Sequence record: MK250028.1
Reading direction: 5' to 3' (one strand)
DNA length: 64,000 nucleotides
Part shown: positions 5,024-56,420 of the stretch, piece by piece
How positions within the stretch are numbered: the first letter of the stretch is position 1
How the letters are laid out: every line of letters starts with the position of its first letter
Translations under genes and position numbers: made by a program
Notes under the pieces: model-generated
Seen by the model: only the letters and a program-made list of their open reading frames with translations
What the model was told of the DNA's origin: nothing
Database searches by the model: none

Positions 5024-5119
5024 AATCTTTATATTTAAATTGTTAATATTTATGTTTATTATTTACATTACAAAGATACATAATATTTTCCTAAATAAAA
5101 AATATATTACCTAAAATTA

Positions 5120-24570: not shown

Positions 24571-26778
24571 TTATTCATTTCTATTTATATTATATTTATC
24601 TAAAAGATAATTTGCAAAATCTTCTTTTTCCTATGTTTTATTATTAAATCTAAAAAAGAAATTAAGATTAAGACCTACTTTTCCACCTTGCAAATAATTA
24701 GTTGGCCAAAGTCTTACCATCTTATTCATTACATATTCCTCTATTGTCTTGAATCTATAATGATTTAACCTTGCGTTTTCCCATGTTTTTTCATTATCTC
24801 TTAATTTTATAGAATTTATACATAACTAACCTATTGTATTTACTGTAACTATTTTTTTACTATATGGCGAATCATATAAAATGCCATGAGGTGAATTAAA
24901 TTCTATATTATCTACACATGTTTTAAATATTATTTTAGTTTGAGTAGACCAATTTTCTGTAATAGGTAGATAATCTGTAAATCTTTTAATTGAATAATTA
25001 TTATCTTCTACTTTTAATATTTCTGAATCTGTAAACTATCTCCAGCAAACTCTTATTGTATTAATTCCTCTATCATTAAACATATCATTAGATAAAAATT
25101 CATGTATATCATTACAATCTAATTCTAAAAATTCATCAATATCGAAATATGCGATCCAATCATATTTGTCTTTGTATATATTATAGCAATCTGTATATGA
25201 TGGAATCTAAACCAATTCTTTCCCTCTCTAATCTTTTAATATTACATATCCAGAATTTATATAATCAGATATTACATCTTCAAAATGTTCGCCATCAATA
25301 TCATTGTTATCATATAAAACAATATTATCAAATCCTATTGATTTATGATGTTCAACAAATTCTCTTATATAATTATTTTCCATTTTTCCTATACAGCATA
25401 ATAAGATCTTTCCTGTATATTTTTTAGGTTTATTATATAAATTCAAATGATTTAATTTTACTGGGCATACATCAATTAATTTCTACAAATCAATATCATA
25501 TGTTGAATCATAGTTATTCTTTAATTTCAATAAATCATCTTCTGTTGTTTCTTCTGTTACTAAATATGAATCATATAATGGTTTATGAATAGATAAAAAG
25601 AAATCTTCGAATTTAAAGTCCTATCCTATATTTTTACCTATACTAATCCATATATTTGGAATCCTATATGCTTCTGAAATAATCAACCCATGTAAACTTT
25701 CTGAAACAATAAATTCACATTCTTCTATATTTTTTATTATATCTTTCCAATCATTATATTTTGTAAAATCTATTATTAATATATCATCATTATCTTTAAA
25801 TTTATTTAATATATATGATTTAATATGTGAATGATGCGGAATAATTCCCAACTTATATTTTTTCATTACATATGGTTGATAATAATATGGAAATAATAAT
25901 GCTGGATCCCCATAAACTTTTGGGCAATTTATATTTAATTCCTATAAGTAATCCCTTGTTTTGGGACCTCTCACTGCATATATTTTATTTGGTTTATTTT
26001 TTAAATTATGTTTATATAAGAAACCACTCCCCCATATTTTTGTAAAATCATCTATATATTCATCACATAAAATAGAGCCTATGAATATATAATTTATTTT
26101 CTTATCTTTCTTATTATATTTTTTATGTTGTTTACCTGTAAGTTCTTTTAAAAAAGAAAAATTTATATCATCACCAAAGTTATGTGGTATTACTGTATTA
26201 TCAGAATTTAAAAATGCCCAACTATTTAAATATATAGTATCATTCTCGTTCTTCATAATTTCGCTATTTAATTCTTTTTGAAATAATGAATTCGAAGTAT
26301 TATTTTTCTTCAATACATTTACAACTTCAGTATTAATTTTATTTTCTTTTTCCTTTTTTATTTTATCTTTAAACTATTTACTATTAATAATAACATTTTT
26401 ATTTTTAATAATATCCTATTTCTCTTTAAGAATTTCCTAAATTGGTTTTACTTTAGACTCAATAGTAGGTATCATGATATTGGAAACATAAGCATACGTT
26501 TCCTTATTTGTTTTTATATTGTTAATATTAATTTTTGTATTATTTCCTTTATGTTCTTTTTCTTTATTATCATAATTAACAAATGTTTTCATATTAGGTT
26601 TCGTAACATTACCTAATATGTACTTATCAGGATTATATGTACCTTGTAACTAATTTATATTATTAGTCACTGATGAGAATCCGTCCTAATTATAATAAAC
26701 ACCAGAATTCTAGGCGTAACTTCTATTTTTTGAAAAATATGCTTTATCTATCTTCTATACATTTTTAATTGGAAACAT
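24571..26778 (-). CDS. Polysaccharide pyruvyltransferase + GT2/GT92-like glycosyltransferase fusion
   Basis: 735 aa under code 15 (about 15 TAG); NFGDD, WGSG, AVRGPKT, GDPALL, SESLHG; then ENNYIREFVEHH..GFDNIVLYDNND and YDWIAYFDIDEF. Confidence 0.8.
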
Positions 26779-26902
26779 ACAGATATAAAATTATTTTAAT
26801 ATATTTATTTTAAATAGAAAAGGATAGACTATTCTCTACGAACAATCTATCCTTAATTTAATATGAAAAACCCGAAATTAAGTTTTGAACTTAAGTTTAT
26901 AT

Positions 26903-35311: not shown

Positions 35312-35796
35312 NNNNNNNNNNNNNNNNNNNNNNNNNNNNNNNNNNNNNNNNNNNNNNNNNNNNNNNNNNNNNNNNNNNNNNNNNNNNNNNNNNNNNNNNN
35401 NNNNNNNNNNNNNNNNNNNNNNNNNNNNNNNNNNNNNNNNNNNNNNNNNNNNNNNNNNNNNNNNNNNNNNNNNNNNNNNNNNNNNNNNNNNNNNNNNNNN
35501 NNNNNNNNNNNNNNNNNNNNNNNNNNNNNNNNNNNNNNNNNNNNNNNNNNNNNNNNNNNNNNNNNNNNNNNNNNNNNNNNNNNNNNNNNNNNNNNNNNNN
35601 NNNNNNNNNNNNNNNNNNNNNNNNNNNNNNNNNNNNNNNNNNNNNNNNNNNNNNNNNNNNNNNNNNNNNNNNNNNNNNNNNNNNNNNNNNNNNNNNNNNN
35701 NNNNNNNNNNNNNNNNNNNNNNNNNNNNNNNNNNNNNNNNNNNNNNNNNNNNNNNNNNNNNNNNNNNNNNNNNNNNNNNNNNNNNNNNNNNNNNNN
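35312..35796. other. Assembly gap (485 N)
   Basis: Run of N at the switch from minus- to plus-strand genes. Confidence 1.
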
Positions 35797-42488: not shown

Positions 42489-42761
42489 ATGGAATTAACA
42501 AAGGAATATCTTTTAGATCATGGATATGAAACAAATCATCCTGATCGTGTTTTGTGTCGTTTTTATAAGACTAATAATGAATCTCCTGAGTGGCGAGTTA
42601 GTGTAGAACAGGAATATTTTCCATTGAGTAATAAACTTACATTCAATATTAATTGTTGGAAGTGTAATGAGAGTGGTGCTATTATTAAGCGTTCTTCCAT
42701 AGGATATGCTACAACAGTTGAAGAGTTGAATAATGTTATTGCTCTATGTGGAATCGAGTAA
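42489..42761 (+). CDS. Hypothetical protein
   Basis: 90 aa ORF. Confidence 0.6.
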   Translation: MELTKEYLLDHGYETNHPDRVLCRFYKTNNESPEWRVSVEQEYFPLSNKLTFNINCWKCNESGAIIKRSSIGYATTVEELNNVIALCGIE

Positions 42762-43582
42762 TATTTAATATAAAGAATTTATGGTTTTGGTATTTAATAA
42801 ATTATTATACCAGAACCTATTTCAATAATTTAAAGAATATGATGGTTAAACCGTATATTAAAGAAGATAGAAAATTAACAGCTAAGAATCATATAGAAGA
42901 AATGGAAAATTCTTTTCATCCTATGATTCAAACTTCTATTAGAGATTCTGTTGTATATACAGAGGATGATAATGTTTTAGATAAAAGAAATATTATTGTA
43001 GAAGATATAAAGACAGAAGATGCAGTTTTTAAGTATGGAGAAGATAAACATTTATGTGTATTGAATTTTTCAAGCTATAAATATCCTGGTGGAGGTTTCA
43101 TTAAAGGTGCGATAGCTCAAGAAGAAGCATTATGTCATGCAAGTGATTTATATAATGTAATCTCCGATAAAAAATTTAATACATATTATGAACATAATCG
43201 ACAAAATACTAATGGCGGATTATATAAGAATTTTGCTATCTATTCTCCAAATATTATTTTTAATAGAGTTGCTGATAATTTTATTTCTGTAGATGTAATT
43301 ACATGTCCAGCACCAAATCTTTCACATTATGAAGGACATATTTATTATGCGATGAAAGCTATGAATGATAGAATAAAATTTATTCTTGATATTGCAGAGA
43401 AACATAAACAAAAGAATTTGGTTCTTGGTGCATTTGGATGCGGAGTATTTAAGAATGATCCTCAATTTGTTGCTGAAGTATTTAAGGAATTATTGGGATC
43501 TTCTAAATATCATTTTGAAGCCATTATATTCGCAATACCGGGAGGAATTAATTATAAGAAATTTAAAGAAGTTTTTTCTTAA
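42746..43582 (+). CDS. TIGR02452/DUF2263 macrodomain protein (microbial PARG-like)
   Basis: VLNFSSYKYPGGGFIKGAIAQEEALCHAS, IYSP, ITCPAPN, LVLGAFGCGVFKN. Confidence 0.9.
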   Translation: MWNRVIFNIKNLWFWYLINYYTRTYFNNLKNMMVKPYIKEDRKLTAKNHIEEMENSFHPMIQTSIRDSVVYTEDDNVLDKRNIIVEDIKTEDAVFKYGEDKHLCVLNFSSYKYPGGGFIKGAIAQEEALCHASDLYNVISDKKFNTYYEHNRQNTNGGLYKNFAIYSPNIIFNRVADNFISVDVITCPAPNLSHYEGHIYYAMKAMNDRIKFILDIAEKHKQKNLVLGAFGCGVFKNDPQFVAEVFKELLGSSKYHFEAIIFAIPGGINYKKFKEVFS

Positions 43583-44768: not shown

Positions 44769-45902
44769 ATGTTAAAGTCTATTAAAATACGAATATATCC
44801 TGATAATGTTTAGAAAGAATTTATTTCTAAACAGTTAGGTTGTTGTCGATTTATATATAATAAATTATTGTATTATAAGAAGTCATAGTATGAGTAGAAT
44901 AAACAATCTGTTTCTTTATCACAGTTAGGTAAATATTTAACTAATTTAAAGAAACTAAATGAATATTCTTTTTTAAATGATGTTTATTCTTAGTGTTTAT
45001 AGCAATCAATGTAGGATATGATTAAAGCATATGATAATTTCTTTAAATTACATAATGGTTATCCTAAATTTAAATCAAAGAAAGATACTAAACAAACATG
45101 TAGATTTACAAATACTATATTTAAATTTAAGAAAAAGAAAATTAATGGTAATAGGATAACATTAATTAAATAGTTATAGAATATATTATTTAAATGTTCA
45201 AAAAGAGATGAAATATATTTAAATCATAATCAGGATAAAATCCATTTTATTACTCTTACTAAAACATCTACTGAAAAATATTATCTATCTATTTGTATTG
45301 AGTATAATATTTATAAAAAAGAAAAGTTAGATACAGTAATAGGTCTTGATTTAGGTATTAAAGACTTTATAGTAGATTCTAATGGAAATAGATATGAGAA
45401 TAAACATTTTTATAAAAACCAATAAAAGAAATTAAAGAAATTATAGAGGTTGTTAAGTAAGAAATAGAAAGGAAGTAATAATAGAAATAAAGTTAGAATT
45501 AAATTAGCTAACGTTTATGAAAAAATAGCTAATCAAAGAAGCACATATTTACATCAAATTAGTTCAAAATTAGTTAACGAGAACCAAGTTATCTGTATTG
45601 AAGATTTAAATGTAAATGGTATGATGTCTAATCATAAATTAGCTAAATCTATATAGGACTTAAGTTTCTATGAATTTAGACGTTAGTTAGAATATAAATG
45701 TAGATAGAATGGAAGACAATTAATGATTATAGATAGATTTTATCCTTCTTCTAAAACATGTCACAATTGTGGATATATTTATAAAAGTTTAAAATTAAAT
45801 GAACGCGACTGGATATGTCCACATTGTAGATCTCTAATAGATAGAGATTATAATGCTTCATTAAATATTTTAACTGAAGGATTAAGACAAATTAATTTAT
45901 AA
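44769..45902 (+). pseudogene. tnpB: TnpB copy 2, interrupted by one TAA
   Basis: Same 1134-nt length as copy 1; 13 TAG; TAA at 45423-45425 where copy 1 has GAA; RuvC residues present. Confidence 0.85.
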
Positions 45903-46061: not shown

Positions 46062-46532
46062 ATGAGTTTGTACAAATATCCAAGTATACATGGTTTGAAG
46101 GATATTGCAATGATTTATAATGATTCTGAATGGGATAATGCAAAACTTAAAGTGTGGGATCCTGAATATCAAAGAGAATATAATATATCATTTACAGGTT
46201 CTACAAGACCAACTGAAACTGAACCAGGTATAGTAAGTTTCAATATATCAAAAGTAAAAGACGAAAAATCTGCTGATGAAAAATCAATAGATATTTATTT
46301 AGATAAAAGATTTCCTAATATATCTAAATTAGAGAGAAACAAATATGAATTGATTTTTAGAGCAGGTGTTGAATATGGAAAGAATGTAAGTAAAAAAGAT
46401 TTACTTAAAGAATTATTTAAATCACCATGTGAAAAATGTGGTAGTTATATGATGTCAGATAATTGTATTTGTAATAAATTATATAACTATTGTGATTTTA
46501 TAGAAGAAGTAAAGGAAAGGATAGAGAAATAA
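46062..46532 (+). CDS. Hypothetical protein
   Basis: 156 aa; ATG directly abuts the omegaRNA end. Confidence 0.65.
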   Translation: MSLYKYPSIHGLKDIAMIYNDSEWDNAKLKVWDPEYQREYNISFTGSTRPTETEPGIVSFNISKVKDEKSADEKSIDIYLDKRFPNISKLERNKYELIFRAGVEYGKNVSKKDLLKELFKSPCEKCGSYMMSDNCICNKLYNYCDFIEEVKERIEK

Positions 46533-46557
46533 GAATCTCTATCCTTTATTATTTTAT

Positions 46558-47130
46558 TTAATATTCATCATCGTCATCCCATTCATCATCTGAATCATCA
46601 TAATCTTCCTCTTCATCATCAAAATTAGAATCAGAAAGATAAATTTCTTCTATAACTACTTGATTAACTTTGAATACCATAAGTCCTTCTGAAAATTCAA
46701 GTTCAATATCAATTTCACCATCTTCATTTGCAGGGAATATTTGAATACTTTCATCTTGTTTTAATTCAATTTCAGGTTTACAATAGGCAATATCAAAAAT
46801 ACCTATTGTACCAGAATCTACATCATATTTTTGATTTGTCATAGAATCATATGTACCATCGCCATATTGAGTTCCTTGAATAATACCTATAACTTCCTCA
46901 TCATTTTCAAGAATTCCATCAGGATATTTCTTTGCACCCCATACATTATCATAAATATCTTCTGTTAAACAATAACATGGATCACCAATAACAAGTGATT
47001 CTACATTTGTTAATGTTACATAATAACGTCCACTTGTTTGTGTATATTTCTCATTAATTGATTTCTTTACAGATTTTGATACTGATTTCATTATACTTTC
47101 ATATAATGATTTCTTTTGTTTATTATTCAT
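46558..47130 (-). CDS. Leader-bearing hypothetical protein (GDPCY family, DUF4241-like)
   Basis: N-terminus KKSLYESIMKSVSKSVKKSINE; LVIGDPCY, YGDGTY, VDSGTIG; acidic tail. Confidence 0.7.
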   Translation of the reverse strand: MNNKQKKSLYESIMKSVSKSVKKSINEKYTQTSGRYYVTLTNVESLVIGDPCYCLTEDIYDNVWGAKKYPDGILENDEEVIGIIQGTQYGDGTYDSMTNQKYDVDSGTIGIFDIAYCKPEIELKQDESIQIFPANEDGEIDIELEFSEGLMVFKVNQVVIEEIYLSDSNFDDEEEDYDDSDDEWDDDDEY

Positions 47131-47170: not shown

Positions 47171-47245
47171 TTTTAACAAAGATACATAAAATTTTTTAAA
47201 TAAAAAAGAGATGTAATTTAATTATTACATCTCTTAAATTATTAA

Positions 47246-47548
47246 TTATCCATCATATCCGTATTTACCGAATACATGAACAATTTCACCGCTTTTAGTT
47301 GTATAAGATTTATCATAAGATTCTAGATCATAATCACCGAAGTAATCATCATATGATTTATATCTCCAGCTATCTTCTGTAATATCTTCCTCTGATATAG
47401 AATCTTTTGAAACTAATTTATTATGATCTCTATCAAGAACATATGTTCCATTTTTCCATCCATTATATTCATCATCTGATGCAAATGTCAATGAATGTGT
47501 AGAACTTGAGTTAGTTTCAAATACACTTTTCCTTACTTGAATTTTCAT
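47246..47548 (-). CDS. FETNSSSTH-motif protein D
   Basis: MKIQVRKSVFETNSSSTHSL. Confidence 0.8.
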   Translation of the reverse strand: MKIQVRKSVFETNSSSTHSLTFASDDEYNGWKNGTYVLDRDHNKLVSKDSISEEDITEDSWRYKSYDDYFGDYDLESYDKSYTTKSGEIVHVFGKYGYDG

Positions 47549-47566
47549 TATATATTATTATATATT

Positions 47567-48130
47567 TTAATTACTCTTATAGTATTCCCATGATTTTCCA
47601 AAATTTGGACAATCCAACTCTTCATCACTATTATCATTACCTGTTGATACATAACTATTATAATCAAACAAATAATTCATAAGTTTTTTATCATTACTTA
47701 TAACATCTTCGAGAAAATCACCTACTTCATTTCCATGATCTATATAACCACTATCTTCTTCATCATCATTATTCATAAATTTAATATAAGTATATTCACT
47801 ACCATCATCATATTTATGAACTTTAACTTTCATATTAGCAGCATATGGAAATAGTGCTTTAATATTATGTTTTGCAAGAATATCTGTAATTGATTTAATT
47901 GCATTATTTACTTTATCAATATTATTCCAATAACAACTTGTAATTGCTTCCCATAGATATTCTGCTTTAGTAGCAGTGTCAAAATGAATATCAAAATCCC
48001 ATCCAAATTCGCCTTTACCAAATATTACTTTATCAGGAAATTCATTAATATCAGATTTCTTAATAATGGAAATAGAATGTGTTGAACTTGAATTTGTTTC
48101 AAATACACTACGTCTAACTTGTACTTTCAT
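47567..48130 (-). CDS. FETNSSSTH-motif protein C
   Basis: MKVQVRRSVFETNSSSTHSI; GYIDH and TGNDN later in the protein. Confidence 0.8.
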   Translation of the reverse strand: MKVQVRRSVFETNSSSTHSISIIKKSDINEFPDKVIFGKGEFGWDFDIHFDTATKAEYLWEAITSCYWNNIDKVNNAIKSITDILAKHNIKALFPYAANMKVKVHKYDDGSEYTYIKFMNNDDEEDSGYIDHGNEVGDFLEDVISNDKKLMNYLFDYNSYVSTGNDNSDEELDCPNFGKSWEYYKSN

Positions 48131-48154
48131 TTTATTTTATAAAATTAATAATTA

Positions 48155-48820
48155 TTAAATAATATAAATCTTTGGTTTATAATAAGGTGCATAAGCTTCA
48201 TCGGCATAAGTAATAGTATTATTATCATCCATAATATTCCAAAAATATTCATTGAATTTTTCTACTGTTAACCAACCACCATTTTCACCAATATTTTCAA
48301 AAAACTTTTTATTTGTATCTGTATTTTTTGTAAATTCAACATATGAACCATATTCAAGTTGATTCTTAACATCTTGAATATCATACTCATGTTGTTTTGC
48401 AATCTTCTTTATATACTCTACAAACTTCTTATATACTTCTGTATCTTCTAACCAATCATCATGATTATCCTCAAAATAATGGTTTCTATATTCAGCTCTA
48501 TTATAATCTTCAATATAATATGCATTATTATTTAATTCCATTGCAATATATTGAAGTTTAGCAACCCAATTATTAATGATATAATAAATATTAGTCATTT
48601 CATCACCATTTTCGAAATCAATACCACGAAGAATAAATGTATGTTCTATAATATAATCCTTTGGATTAAATATACCACAGTCCATATTATCCTTATATTG
48701 CTCAAAAATAGCTTTATATACAATATCTTTTACATCATTAATTGTTCCATGTGTAATTTGTAAAGAATGTGTTGAACTTGAGTTCGTTTCAAACACCCCT
48801 CTTCTAATTTGTACTTTCAT
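48155..48820 (-). CDS. FETNSSSTH-motif protein B
   Basis: MKVQIRRGVFETNSSSTHSL. Confidence 0.8.
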   Translation of the reverse strand: MKVQIRRGVFETNSSSTHSLQITHGTINDVKDIVYKAIFEQYKDNMDCGIFNPKDYIIEHTFILRGIDFENGDEMTNIYYIINNWVAKLQYIAMELNNNAYYIEDYNRAEYRNHYFEDNHDDWLEDTEVYKKFVEYIKKIAKQHEYDIQDVKNQLEYGSYVEFTKNTDTNKKFFENIGENGGWLTVEKFNEYFWNIMDDNNTITYADEAYAPYYKPKIYII

Positions 48821-49320
48821 TAATCTGGTTCTATATAAATTTTTGTATGTTCATGATTTAAATCTTTATCGTAATTGAAATAATCCCTATCAAATATGTC
48901 AACTTTTGATTCATCATTAAAAATATATTCTAACAATAATTGCTCAAAGTCTTCATCTTTTTCATCAAATAGGTCATTAAATACATCTTCATACCCATAG
49001 CTATAATTATCATATTCTCCCGTTTCTGAAATAAGGAATACACAATTAATATCATATTTAGATAATACTTTTTCAATGCGATATTTAGTAGACATAAAAT
49101 GAGATAGATTATCACTAAATGTCATATAGTCAAATAAGTTATCTAATCTATCTTGAAAATGATTACCTTTATCTCTTTCTCGCCAAGGTAAACCAAATTT
49201 AAGTGTAGTTCCTGCATATAATTTAAGAATTTTATCATCTACAGGTTTTGTACATATAGTTAATGTATGTGTTGAACTTGAATTAGTTTCAAATACACTA
49301 TGCCTTATTTGAATTTTCAT
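48820..49320 (-). CDS. FETNSSSTH-motif protein A
   Basis: MKIQIRHSVFETNSSSTHTL; TAATG coupling to the next gene. Confidence 0.8.
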   Translation of the reverse strand: MKIQIRHSVFETNSSSTHTLTICTKPVDDKILKLYAGTTLKFGLPWRERDKGNHFQDRLDNLFDYMTFSDNLSHFMSTKYRIEKVLSKYDINCVFLISETGEYDNYSYGYEDVFNDLFDEKDEDFEQLLLEYIFNDESKVDIFDRDYFNYDKDLNHEHTKIYIEPD

Positions 49321-49343
49321 AATTTTCCTATTGTTTTATATTA

Positions 49344-50228
49344 TTACTTATTATATTTGTTTCTAATAAATTGAAACATTTCATCCATAGTCTTATCACC
49401 TATATGGAATCTTTCTTTAGAAATTGAATTCTTTGCAAATTCACCCTTTACTAAATCAATATAAAATGTATAACCACCATCATCTCCCATGTAGAATTCA
49501 TTCCATTCATCATCGGACATAATACGTTTTACATCAAGTTGCTTAATTGCTAGATTATCAAAACTTAATACTTTAAACTTCTCCGTAATTTCCTTAAGAT
49601 TATCAAAGATATATTTACGATTTGTTTCAATCATATCATTATGTTCCTTATGGAAATTAACTCCTCGTTGTAAATCTTTATATCCAAGGAGAAGAACTTT
49701 AAGATTATGATTTGCCAACTTATTAATATCATCTTCTGTAAGAATACCTACAATAGTATGAAGAACTGTATTAGGAATACTATTCATTTTCTGGATAAGT
49801 TCATCAGATGGTTTTACCAACGAAACACCAATACCATATACGAGTTTATTATCAGACCAATCCTTTAATTTATCATAATTATCAAAGAATTGTTTTTGAT
49901 TTACTGTAATATTAGCAAATACTTTCTTCGATTTAAGAAAATTAAGGAACTTATCAAGATCAGGGTGATCAAGGTCATTACCATTCAATGCAATTTCTGT
50001 ATATGGATGAAGTGTATTTATAAATGGATATGTAAACAAGTTACCATGTTTCCCATGTGGCGAACATCCTTCATAACAAAACGCACAGCCTATATTACAC
50101 TTATCTGTTAATTTACAGTCTACATTTTCACTATATGCTGGAATAAACTCATCATCATTTGTACGACGAATTTTTGTTCCATCACCCAAAATTGTTACGA
50201 TATAATTACCATTCTTATAACTTGGCAT
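49344..50228 (-). CDS. Radical SAM enzyme
   Basis: CNIGCAFC (CxxxCxxC), EIALNG, ANITVN; no Cys-rich SPASM domain visible. Confidence 0.9.
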   Translation of the reverse strand: MPSYKNGNYIVTILGDGTKIRRTNDDEFIPAYSENVDCKLTDKCNIGCAFCYEGCSPHGKHGNLFTYPFINTLHPYTEIALNGNDLDHPDLDKFLNFLKSKKVFANITVNQKQFFDNYDKLKDWSDNKLVYGIGVSLVKPSDELIQKMNSIPNTVLHTIVGILTEDDINKLANHNLKVLLLGYKDLQRGVNFHKEHNDMIETNRKYIFDNLKEITEKFKVLSFDNLAIKQLDVKRIMSDDEWNEFYMGDDGGYTFYIDLVKGEFAKNSISKERFHIGDKTMDEMFQFIRNKYNK

Positions 50229-50358
50229 AATTTCTTTATTTTAAAAAATTAATAAATTTAAATTTAATATCACGAAGATACATATTTTGTTTATATATAA
50301 AAAAGAAAAATAGAGAATATCTAACATTAATTAGTAAATATTCTCTATTTTTAAAAAT

Positions 50359-50861
50359 TTATAATTCTATTATTTCTAATTTATTATAAGGTATTATTCC
50401 ATTATAAAAATATGTTGGATCTCTTTCATCTTCAGATTCTTCATCATTTTCATCATATATGTTGTTTTGATCTAAAGAAAGTTTATTTAAATCAATATCA
50501 GATGTTTTAATTCTAAATACAATAATTTCTAATTCTTTTTCATATCTATCTTCATATTCTTCTGCAAATTCTTCAAATTCATCAGAGCTATCTAAATATG
50601 ATTCTGCAACATATTCATCTGTTGCTAAAAATACCCCGTACTTTATATTTTCATATGGAGTATTTTCATAATTCCAAAATCGTTTCTTTGGTACTTTTGC
50701 ACCTAACCCATTTTTCTTTATTGAACGCAAATAACAAGATGGAGTTGCATGATAAAAATATTTATATTATAATTGATTGTTTCATTAATTGATTTCTTTA
50801 CAGATTTAGAAATAGATTTTATTATATTTTCATATAATGTTTTCTTTTGTATAGAATTCAT
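50359..50861 (-). pseudogene. Leader-bearing ADP-ribosyltransferase-like protein, 1-nt frameshift after the leader
   Basis: ATG 50861 gives MNSIQKKTLYENIIKSISKSVKKSINE; the domain YFYHATPS..LRSIKKNGL..GVFLATDEYVAESY is in the -1 frame. Confidence 0.6.
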
Positions 50862-54058: not shown

Positions 54059-54146
54059 GATAAAGGGATATAGATTAAATTATATGAATCTATATCCCTT
54101 TATTATTTAAAATAAATAATGAAATATTGTATGAATATTTTAATTT

Positions 54147-56420
54147 ATGGAAGATAACAATGTGAATAATATAATTTAGAATGATGAAGATAAAATTTCA
54201 ATATAGTCTACTATAAGTTCAGCAGAAGGAAACTTGAATTTTTCACAAAATAGAGATGAAACTACGGGTTCTGGAGGAGACGGAGGTTCATCTTTAAGTG
54301 GTAGTTCTACATCGGGAAATACTTCATCAAATTCAAGTGGTAGTGAATCATCTCAATTAGCGAGTGATAATTTAACACCTATATTATTGATATTAGGTGA
54401 TAGTCCAGATCCTGAACCAGATGTTGAGGAAGAACCTGTATTGTTGGAAGAAGATAATTTATAGCAATATACTATTGCACAAAATGGTTAGGAACCATAT
54501 CACGTAATAATAGGTAATTCTGGGTGTACTAATAAAGTTGATGAAGAGCATATTATAGTTATACAAGAAGGTGATAATATTATAAATAATAACAATAATA
54601 TTATTGCAATAACTGCTAAAATAGATTAGAGTTGGTGTCATGTTGTTTTTGAACATCCTTTAAATTCACCATTATAGTTGGGAACTCCATATAAATTAAA
54701 TTCTGATAATTTTAGTAGTGAAGATAATGAAAGAACTATTGTTCCTATGATAACGTGTGAGCAAAATTCAGGTCCTCAAAGAACAGCAAATATTATATTT
54801 TGCATTGATGGTATAGAATCAGATTTAAAAATAGGAATTACTCAAAATGCAGGTAATTATAGCGAAGAACCAGTTATTATTAAATATAAATCTGTTGAAA
54901 ATGGTGTTATAAAGTATGATATATTAGATAGTAACAAAATATATTATATTCATAAAAATAGTAACTATATATTTAGTGACAGAACAAATATGAGTGAGAA
55001 TCCTTTATTATTTGGATTAAGAGATAGTAATAATAATATAAATGGTAATTTAAAAAATTCAGATAGTTCTTATACATTTGAATCAGAACCAGAAGGATAT
55101 AATATGGTAATAACAGATAATAATACTGCTACAACAACAAATACAGCATATCTCATGATTATAACACAGCCGCAAACGGTTGATATAAATCAAGTAATAA
55201 CATTTAAATATAATAATATTGATTTTATAAAGGTTAAATATTCAGAATCATAGAAAGATTATAAAACATCTATAAAAATATGTAAATTAGAGAATTTATA
55301 GAATTATAAAGAAACATCAGGATATAATATATATTTATTTAATTCTGATATAGGAACGACTGCAAATATAAAAACATCATTTACTGTATGTAGTACTGTA
55401 AAATTACATAGTTACGGCAGTAATGATGATATTAGTAATGGACGAATTGTTGCATGTATACGTCTAGATAAAAATACAGATAAAATTCCAGAAAATAATA
55501 TAAGTGATTTAAATGATGATAATGATGATATATGGCATTAGTTAAAACCTGTTGGTACCACATTAACATCAACATTATTTAAAGAAACATATAAAGATAT
55601 ATATTTATAGGATTGGACAAATTTGAAAGTTTATAATTATTCTGCTGAAACAATAACTAACGTTGAAGAAAATTAGAATATATATGTATATATTGTAAAG
55701 GATTCTAAATATAATAAAGTTGGCGTTATTAATTTTGGCGGAACAATGGGACAAAATGGATATTTGGGTTTATTTAATTATTATTATACGTCTTTATAGG
55801 CTTGCACATATAATACATATTGGATTTGCTGGTGTCATTGGTATGGAGATACAAATGACAGTTATTATGATAATTCTGGTGATACAATAACAGAAACGGA
55901 AACAATAAATGCAACATTTAAAAATAAACAATTTGGAACATTTGATTTATACTTTGTTGCAATGAATGAACGAGGTAATGATAATGATATACATGATATT
56001 GATATTGCGAATAAAATAATAAATTCTGGAAAAAATTATAAAAAGTATAATATTCCTTCAGGTACTTATAATTTTAATATGAATAAAATAATGGGTCTTG
56101 TATTTCATCCAAAAAATTCGTCTATAAATGAAATTAAAACATTTAGAGAAATATATGATACATTATAGTTTAAAAATAATAATCATTATTATGATATAAT
56201 AAGTGTATATAAAGATTATTATGTTATAGATTTGAATAATGTTTGTAATGATATAAATGGAAATATCATTAATTTAAATGAATTTTATACAGATATGATG
56301 TATTAGATATATATTTTTACAAAAGTAAATGGTTCATTAATATATATAGGTATACTTTCTTATGGACATGTTAATACTAAACAAAATTGGGGAAATATTG
56401 CATGTTATAGCGAGGGTTAA
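54147..56420 (+). CDS. Large TAG-rich putative tail/receptor-binding protein with a BACON-like domain (part 1)
   Basis: 757 aa under code 15; SWCHV..ITCEQNSGPQRTANIIF..IGITQ; ATAAATA at 54112. Confidence 0.65.

Follow-up and report, generated by a model that had tools for sequence, protein, structure and literature searches.

A phage radical SAM enzyme and client proteins with an invariant N-terminal peptide point to an undescribed protein-modification system

Why would a phage encode a single radical S-adenosylmethionine (SAM) enzyme directly beside four proteins that differ in their bodies and share an almost identical N terminus? The question is raised by a locus in sequence record MK250028.1, of which we analysed a stretch of 64,000 nucleotides (nt), here called the window. 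It belongs to a giant gut phage, the Prevotella megaphage Lak-B1. On its minus strand, from 50282 to 47206, a promoter-like box, a radical SAM (rSAM) gene, four open reading frames (ORFs) that begin with a common peptide, here called the head, and a terminator follow one another. Our best reading is that of a phage-specific, self-contained module of a maturase and its clients, and we lean modestly towards the view that the rSAM enzyme modifies the TNSSSxH segment of several client proteins. Its five consecutive head-to-tail ORFs are given here, with the body classes A and B defined below:

49344..50228, minus strand: radical SAM enzyme, 294 amino acids (aa), with CNIGCAFC (CxxxCxxC) at residues 44-51
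48820..49320, minus strand: client 1, 166 aa, head and a divergent class A body without IDH, TGNDN and the C-terminal KGN
48155..48820, minus strand: client 2, 221 aa, head and a body unrelated to class A
47567..48130, minus strand: client 3, 187 aa, canonical class A, with the C-terminal end ..YYKSN
47246..47548, minus strand: client 4, 100 aa, class B, with head, W.nG element and C-terminal FG.YGYDG

The four client ORFs begin MKIQIRHSVFETNSSSTHT (166 aa), MKVQIRRGVFETNSSSTHS (221 aa), MKVQVRRSVFETNSSSTHS (187 aa) and MKIQVRKSVFETNSSSTHS (100 aa), and their first 19 residues follow MK(I/V)Q(I/V)R(H/R/K)(S/G)VFETNSSSTH(T/S). The first-pass annotation had described an rSAM gene and four ORFs that share an invariant FETNSSSTH head, and the ORF list, coordinates and translations bear this out. 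The head motif is found nowhere else in the six-frame translation of the window, and in a 553-kb Lak-like record strict-pattern heads are confined to this cluster. The synonymous codon variation that had been noted is also present: over codons 9-19, the four heads differ pairwise by 17 synonymous and 3 non-synonymous changes. The longest exact nucleotide run common to two heads is 11-18 nt, and the three head serines are encoded by AGT TCG AGC in the Microcystis phage Ma-LMM01 and by TCA AGT TCA/TCT in Lak. Together, these differences argue that selection acts on the peptide and not on the DNA. Judged by sequence comparison, the head is under protein-level purifying selection, and the bodies behind it diverge beyond recognition.

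A tally of 113 unique head ORFs from the fetched loci gives M-K-x-Q-I-R-x-G-V-F-E-T-N-S-S-S-x-H-(S/A/T). The arginine, the aromatic residue and the glutamate, none of them demanded by the search pattern, are each present in 111-112 of these sequences. A 32-position head profile matched 7342 cluster representatives (E <=0.001) among 1.84 billion, the clusters being drawn at 50% identity, and in nearly all of the 150 best matches listed the head lies at residues 1-32. In two database proteins, P0241 (288 aa) and P0242 (395 aa), an internal head motif accompanies the N-terminal one; they may be genuine tandem fusions, or neighbouring client genes may have been called as one. Head variants were concordant among the paralogues of one phage in 2 of 7 informative loci (permutation p ~0.0004), too few to build on, and concerted head variation within a phage was set aside.

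How closely is the head tied to the rSAM gene? Of 80 IMG/VR loci picked by rSAM similarity alone (48-100% identity), 79 have head ORFs adjoining the rSAM gene on the same strand, with one to five heads each (one in 36 loci, two in 31, and three, four and five in 4 loci apiece); the sole exception offers merely 787 nt of upstream DNA. Among GTDB species-representative genomes, the rSAM gene was found in only 43 loci, nearly all on contigs of metagenome-assembled genomes and one on the Breznakiella homolactica chromosome. A head adjoins it in 38 of these; of the other five loci, three are truncated by the end of the contig. The co-occurrence that the first-pass annotation had proposed to look for with a motif profile and a neighbourhood analysis is thus found in both samples. 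Approached from the head, four of four informative contexts (P0110, P0027, P0052 and P0300) encode a protein of ~291-298 aa one to three genes downstream, which is an rSAM enzyme by Pfam or profile match in three of them and presumably also, to judge by size and position only, in P0027, where it has no Pfam match; two more contigs end too near the head gene to judge. Isolated phages have the pair as well: gp130 (head) and gp128 (rSAM) in Ma-LMM01, p106 and p108 in Rhodothermus phage RM378, and, in Salmonella phage Arash, gp146, a class A domain (hhalign 98%; GYIDH and GGNDN kept) fused to rSAM. Across 50,697 phage records, all 24 with a class A match fall within the 26 that have the rSAM gene. 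No third universal gene was found in the sampled loci.

Does the enzyme bind the head? Complex predictions of the rSAM enzyme with a client gave a median ipSAE of 0.79 (runs 0.84, 0.79 and 0.27), and the best control reached 0.00. Of 80 solved complexes, 58 attained 0.79, as did 2 of 110 mismatched pairs; these counts hold only roughly here, as the model was made from custom unpaired alignments with SAM and [4Fe-4S] ligands included, a set-up outside the calibration. Contact agreement between runs was at least 69%, and the predicted local distance difference test (pLDDT) score of the partner was at least 69. The client contributes only residues 1-14 and 18-19 to the modelled interface, and the rSAM enzyme contributes residues 16-28 and the barrel strand ends at 35, 37, 78, 80, 104-108, 131-134, 153-157, 177-181, 219-223 and 243-248. 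In the model, client residues 2-8 pair with rSAM strand 18-25, the remainder touches the 243-248 loop and the ends of barrel strands, conserved positions throughout, and head residues 9-19 lie inside the barrel. Modelling of the enzyme with the N terminus had been proposed in the first-pass annotation; only the head enters the active-site barrel, and the model supports binding between head and rSAM enzyme. Taken together, adjacency in both locus samples, the Arash fusion, occurrence in the same phage records and the head-in-barrel model support a functional link between the rSAM enzyme and the head-bearing proteins. Comparison and modelling indicate that the enzyme recognises the invariant N-terminal peptide of its clients.

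What does the head precede? The 113 head ORFs fall into class A, class B and several lineage-specific body types. Class A (~165-200 aa) carries IDH, TGNDN and a C-terminal K-G-N, and class B (~100-137 aa), which ends FG.YGYDG, is the second common client type, with 42 unique members in the sampled loci. The bodies of the four Lak clients had been called divergent. The 221-aa and 100-aa proteins have only residues 1-26 in common with the others, and the bodies of the 187-aa and 166-aa proteins show distant homology to each other (hhalign 98.9% over 140 residues). The 166-aa body type is seen only in Lak-type loci, and the 221-aa client belongs to a metagenome family of its own, with proteins of ~209-223 aa. 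The 187-aa client matches phrog_28997 (E 2.6e-20), which the other three match via the head only, and its full-length homologues, which are 37-45% identical, number at least 320. Invariant in this family are R6, E11, N13, S14, S15, S16, H18, G43, D131, H132, T163, D166, N167, K185 and N187, the last two belonging to the conserved class A C-terminal ..YYKGN, and this conservation of polar residues has an enzyme-like pattern.

The AlphaFold2 model of the 187-aa client has a pLDDT of 92, with residues 7-12 below 50; the head is its sole low-confidence part. A fold search of the PDB with this model gave no match (Foldseek best E 0.1; VIA best Z 2.7), and its ESM Atlas matches are virus-only unnamed clusters. 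One virus-only Atlas cluster of 261 aa (PF11195, Tad2-like, in 97% of members; Thoeris anti-defence 2-like) aligns with ~134 residues of the class A model at a template modelling (TM) score of 0.56, and may combine a class-A-like with a Tad2-like domain. All five proteins of the module were scanned against Pfam, NCBIfam and PADLOC without a significant match, and ten longer head-bearing proteins of other loci had none in Pfam; PDB sequence and profile searches with the rSAM and client families returned nothing. No nucleic-acid-binding domain was detected in the client bodies.

Could the head merely be the best-conserved part of one fold, and the rSAM linkage an accident of neighbourhood? Plain paralogy of this kind would suit the 187-aa and 166-aa proteins, which are homologous throughout. 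It does not account for the 221-aa and 100-aa proteins, which lose all likeness past residue 26, for a head that stands outside the folded core in the monomer model, or for adjacency across phages of Bacteroidota, Cyanobacteria, Rhodothermus and Salmonella, and we give it next to no credence. Hardly more probable is capsid targeting, in which the head would be a T4-type sequence cut by the prohead protease after the Glu of V-F-E-T and the rSAM gene would be an unrelated neighbour. The capsid-targeting sequence of T4 internal proteins resembles a short N-terminal peptide ending hydrophobic-x-Glu, such as these divergent small proteins share. The T4 internal-protein locus is, like the module, an array of divergent small genes with a conserved 5' end whose composition varies between related phages; clients number four in Lak-B and five in Lak-A and Lak-C, which have an extra gene of 118 aa. 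Unlike the T4 peptide, however, the head is tied to an rSAM enzyme and not to a prohead protease, and the near-obligate adjacency, the fusion and the docking model would be left unexplained. Its most invariant residues (TNSSSxH) lie past the putative cut and run into class A strand 1, and the genes around the module are those of replication and repair and not of the capsid head. The insertion or deletion of the 118-aa gene, the only such event examined, has its boundaries at stop codons and in intergenic DNA, outside the heads, a further difference from the T4 locus; it also gives no support to the suggestion in the first-pass annotation that the 54-nt heads may allow cassettes to be shuffled.

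What kind of rSAM enzyme is this? In 22 homologues, the most distant of them at 37% identity, cysteines C44, C48 and C51 never vary and C55 hardly does. The only other cysteine is C38 and residues 56-294 have none, so the enzyme has no auxiliary cluster. It matches phrog_16999 ('Fe-S oxidoreductase') at E 1.6e-35 and falls below the gathering cut-off of the Pfam Radical_SAM family PF04055 (12.4 bits versus 29.5); homologues in loci L004, L006 and L007 have a precomputed PF04055 match, weak in the latter two. By its sequence, it is a divergent branch of the radical SAM superfamily. We found 5572 homologues (>5500 clusters at 90% identity), many of them at 62-69% identity. In the AlphaFold2 model (pLDDT 90), a sheet of three strands at the N terminus (residues 3-23) leads into the barrel. 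Compared with 48,161 PDB representatives, the model matched 34 chains at Z >=8, and nearly all of those listed are solved rSAM enzymes. SkfB led over 263 residues (Z 17.6), followed by SuiB (16.2; both aligned from residue 1), EpeE (15.3), ChlB (14.3), viperin (14.3), BlsE (13.8), the anaerobic sulfatase-maturating enzyme anSME (13.6) and PqqE (13.5), and Foldseek agrees.

The best structural matches are thus rSAM maturases of ribosomally synthesized and post-translationally modified peptides (RiPPs) that have a leader-binding N-terminal domain (SkfB, SuiB, CteB, ChlB, EpeE and PqqE). In these, as in our model, a conserved peptide of the substrate pairs as a strand with the N-terminal sheet and the residues that follow enter the barrel; as proposed for the module, one enzyme can serve several substrates with a common recognition peptide. 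The likeness has its limits. SPASM/twitch maturases (SkfB, SuiB, CteB, anSME and PqqE) have a C-terminal Cys-rich auxiliary-cluster domain that the phage enzyme lacks. Its N-terminal element has just three strands and no Pfam match to a PqqD-like RiPP recognition element (RRE), a winged helix-turn-helix; the sheet can be aligned with the N-terminal regions of SkfB and SuiB and is predicted to bind the head by strand addition. RiPP substrates are short peptides, and the clients are folded proteins of 100-220 aa with the recognition peptide and the presumed target contiguous at the extreme N terminus; Cys, Trp or Lys partners for the known cross-links are absent.

anSME, which converts Ser or Cys to formylglycine, offers another precedent, in which an rSAM enzyme acts on a Ser in a short invariant near-N-terminal motif of a folded enzyme and turns it into a catalytic residue. 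Its (C/S)-x-(P/A)-x-R motif is missing here, however, as E-T-N-S-S-S-x-H has no P or R in register; its two auxiliary clusters are missing too, and the clients, without a PDB fold match, are not alkaline-phosphatase-fold sulfatases. Activases of glycyl radical enzymes (GREs), such as the pyruvate formate-lyase (PFL) activating enzyme PFL-AE and NrdG, resemble the phage enzyme in being small, in having no auxiliary cluster and in being encoded beside their target, with a peptide loop of the client in the barrel. By that analogy, the head would receive from the phage enzyme a protein radical, either stable or relayed, which the client body would use for catalysis. One small rSAM enzyme would then serve larger, enzyme-like proteins through a peptide in its barrel, the same logic by which PFL-AE works with PFL or with the small spare-part protein GrcA. 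Such storage of a radical seems improbable here: the head lacks the invariant Gly of the RVxG(F/W/Y)-type loop (none is invariant in the 113-sequence tally, with G at head position -4 in 72 of 113), the motif is N-terminal and not C-terminal, and in structural similarity PFL-AE (Z 9.4) comes far behind the RiPP maturases. Judged by analogy, the module would work like a RiPP or protein maturase but lacks the features that define SPASM/twitch maturases, anSMEs and GRE activases.

How might maturation proceed? Head residues 2-8 (K-x-Q-I-R-x-x) would join the N-terminal sheet of the enzyme as a strand, like a leader peptide on a RiPP maturase, and residues 9-19 (V-F-E-T-N-S-S-S-x-H-S) would thread into the barrel mouth over the [4Fe-4S]/SAM site. 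For the chemical step, we infer that the 5'-deoxyadenosyl radical would take a hydrogen from a residue of T-N-S-S-S-x-H, most likely from one of the three invariant serines, and that a post-translational change would then be installed on the head. As the enzyme lacks an auxiliary cluster, the reaction is more likely to be redox-neutral (epimerisation, rearrangement or cross-link) than to follow the two-cluster oxidation of anSME; an oxidation in which the electron is returned via the SAM cluster would also be possible. One enzyme would thus serve several clients, namely class A, class B and, in Lak, two added lineage-specific ones, and the modified head would probably become a functional group of each.

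Several observations weigh against maturation of this kind. The complex model is uneven, with one of its three runs scoring just 0.27 and its calibration only rough, and small-molecule enzymes (viperin, BlsE, DesII and BtrN) are among the structural neighbours of the rSAM enzyme. Two Christensenellaceae-binned loci with full flanks (L124 and L125) have the rSAM gene and no detectable head within 5 kb, and the class B gene P0369 (L136/L137) has no rSAM gene from -4.6 to +8 kb. The neighbours of P0369 are genes for thymidine kinase, RecA, DnaB and NrdD. Some rSAM homologues (P0130, P0128 and P0132) contain inteins (PF14890, PF07591), and the rSAM match at locus L031 begins at residue 45. The P0130 intein is inserted inside CxxxCxxC, directly ahead of the third cluster cysteine, which would act as the intein +1 nucleophile; inteins, together with high conservation, are more usual in core nucleotide or DNA-metabolism enzymes. 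Finally, the Arash fusion and the 8-10 contiguous invariant head residues suit a permanent docking or active-site element equally well.

The alternative that we take most seriously, though we think it unlikely, is that the rSAM enzyme and the head proteins form a stable holoenzyme. The head would serve for docking or as a plug and would not be a substrate, and the head proteins would be permanent subunits, for specificity or catalysis, by which the rSAM active site is completed. Their Ser/His loop would bind a phosphate or nucleobase, the substrate would be something else (tRNA, DNA or a nucleotide), and the paralogues would retarget one rSAM enzyme. The covalent class A-rSAM fusion in Arash would fit such an assembly, as would the invariant polar residues that class A has of its own (D131 H132, T163 G164 N165 D166 N167, K185 N187) and an enzyme that is 62-69% identical over many phages and interrupted by inteins within CxxxCxxC, as in core metabolic enzymes. 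RNA-repair genes (Pnkp-like, Rnl1, Thg1 and RlaP) within 6 kb in 11 of 55 lineages point the same way, a linkage that we keep as a hint only. In the model, however, the head occupies the barrel mouth, which is the place of the substrate; of the four Lak clients, three have none of the class A polar motifs and retain the head alone; the nearest structures are peptide maturases; and no body has a detected nucleic-acid-binding domain.

Maturation of the head remains our preferred reading, and the layout of the module bears on when it might act. The 3.4-kb region is 100% identical to that of Prevotella phage Lak-B1 (MK250020.1) and ~73% identical to those of Lak-A and Lak-C; all records are unannotated there. 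Its signals are:

50299..50348, minus strand: AT-rich hairpin ATAGAGAATAT ... ATATTCTCTAT, then a T run, past the upstream gene, found by eye
50273..50282, minus strand: promoter-like box TGTATCTTCG, which differs from TGTATCTTTG by one base and lies 45 nt 5' of the rSAM start codon
47206..47235, minus strand: intrinsic terminator ending the module, with a 12-bp stem, a 6-nt loop and a T run

The terminator had been proposed before and stands at 47235-47206; three terminator-type sites were found in the scanned region and 0.3 were expected. For the promoter the outcome is divided. The proposed TATCTTCG at 50273-50280 is not significant alone (3 matches versus 1.4 expected), but it is contained in a recurrent TGTATCTTYG, of which the window has 11 exact copies, counting both spellings, each on the same strand as the genes next to it; when up to one mismatch is allowed, 26 sites were found and 12 expected, and 0 of 100 shuffles reached the observed number. 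Sites of the form TGTATCTT(T/C)G lie 5' of genes and on the matching strand, for example at 5071, 10920, 12253, 15121, 29625, 29947, 39611, 43608, 47177 and 50273, and the one at 47177-47186, just past the module terminator, is another TGTATCTTTG box. The box at 50273-50282 resembles the Bacteroidota -7 element, TAnnTTTG, and the recurrent box is a candidate -7 box of a phage or host-type promoter. Tentatively, the hairpin at 50299..50348, which a consensus terminator scan did not call (few G-C pairs, long loop), would shield the module from upstream transcription. The layout suggests that the five genes are co-transcribed.

The operon had also been described as TAG-free. Its five genes contain no in-frame TAG in 968 codons and all stop with TAA, whereas 20 of the 34 window frames of at least 200 codons are open only with TAG read-through, with up to 15 in-frame TAG per frame. 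TAG-dependent frames include 24571-26790 (minus strand) and 54144-56420 (plus strand); the TAG-free genes, the module included, form a separate set. Stop-codon recoding has been reported for Lak phages, and the TAG pattern of the window fits it. From the absence of TAG and the host-type promoter box, we infer that the module may be expressed early.

The genes that flank the module, at 46558-47130 and 50718-50861 (both minus strand), share a second, unrelated N-terminal peptide, MN..QKK.LYE.I.KS.SKSVKKSINE. The upstream copy, at 50718-50861, ends after 47 aa, with a 123-aa ORF after it in another frame (50359-50730), and the 190-aa flanking protein matches phrog_20074 and has a long acidic tail at its end. 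A hairpin with a perfect 12-bp stem at 46516-46547, terminator-like on both strands, lies between the convergent genes 46062-46532 (plus strand) and 46558-47130 (minus strand). A 59-aa ORF at 45723-45902 (plus strand) matches the Cas12f1-like/TnpB TNB domain (E 2.4e-15) and is probably the tail of a TnpB-type gene, the longer frame being broken under the standard code. A gene for a microbial-type PARG (ADP-ribose glycohydrolase) lies at 42746-43582 (plus strand), 3.7 kb from the Lak module, and another at 10393-11202 of L004, an unrelated 158-kb contig. In other lineages, genes for a Pnkp-like kinase with an HD domain, T4-type RNA ligase 1, Thg1, RlaP and NAD-dependent DNA ligase recur up to 6 kb away. 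The window also contains a run of 485 N at 35312-35796.

When, and for what, would a phage use such a module? TAG-free coding, the host-type box and the PARG and RNA-repair neighbours weakly suggest an early or counter-defence role. A more specific proposal, which we hold only tentatively, is that the cluster-minimal rSAM enzyme turns a Ser, or a Ser/His pair, of the T-N-S-S-S-x-H loop into a protein-derived cofactor or radical site, and so activates the phage-only class A fold, an enzyme fold not recognised before, and the lineage-specific clients for use early in infection, for example against host defences based on RNA or ADP-ribose.

The family of rSAM enzymes and clients is, by sequence, large and essentially phage-restricted, and the pairing recurs in well over a hundred of the related phage DNA stretches examined. 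Literature searches (motif strings, Ma-LMM01 or megaphage with radical SAM, phage-encoded rSAM and the Arash paper) returned no description of the system; in the family libraries searched, neither partner is functionally named as this system or has a Pfam, NCBIfam or PADLOC annotation. Comparison and modelling point to an undescribed protein-modification system, and so support in part the interpretation given in the first-pass annotation. Few rSAM maturases act on whole proteins (anSME, GRE activases, QhpD and a handful more), and each of these has revealed new cofactor chemistry. Here the 19-residue recognition and target peptide is sharply defined, the client fold has no solved relative, and the presence of the system in isolated phages (Microcystis Ma-LMM01 and its relatives, Salmonella Arash and Rhodothermus RM378) makes its chemistry and phenotype directly testable. 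If the head is modified, phages would hold a new protein-derived functional group and a compact pair of enzyme and tag; if the head proteins are stable subunits instead, they would represent a new way to build and retarget an rSAM active site.

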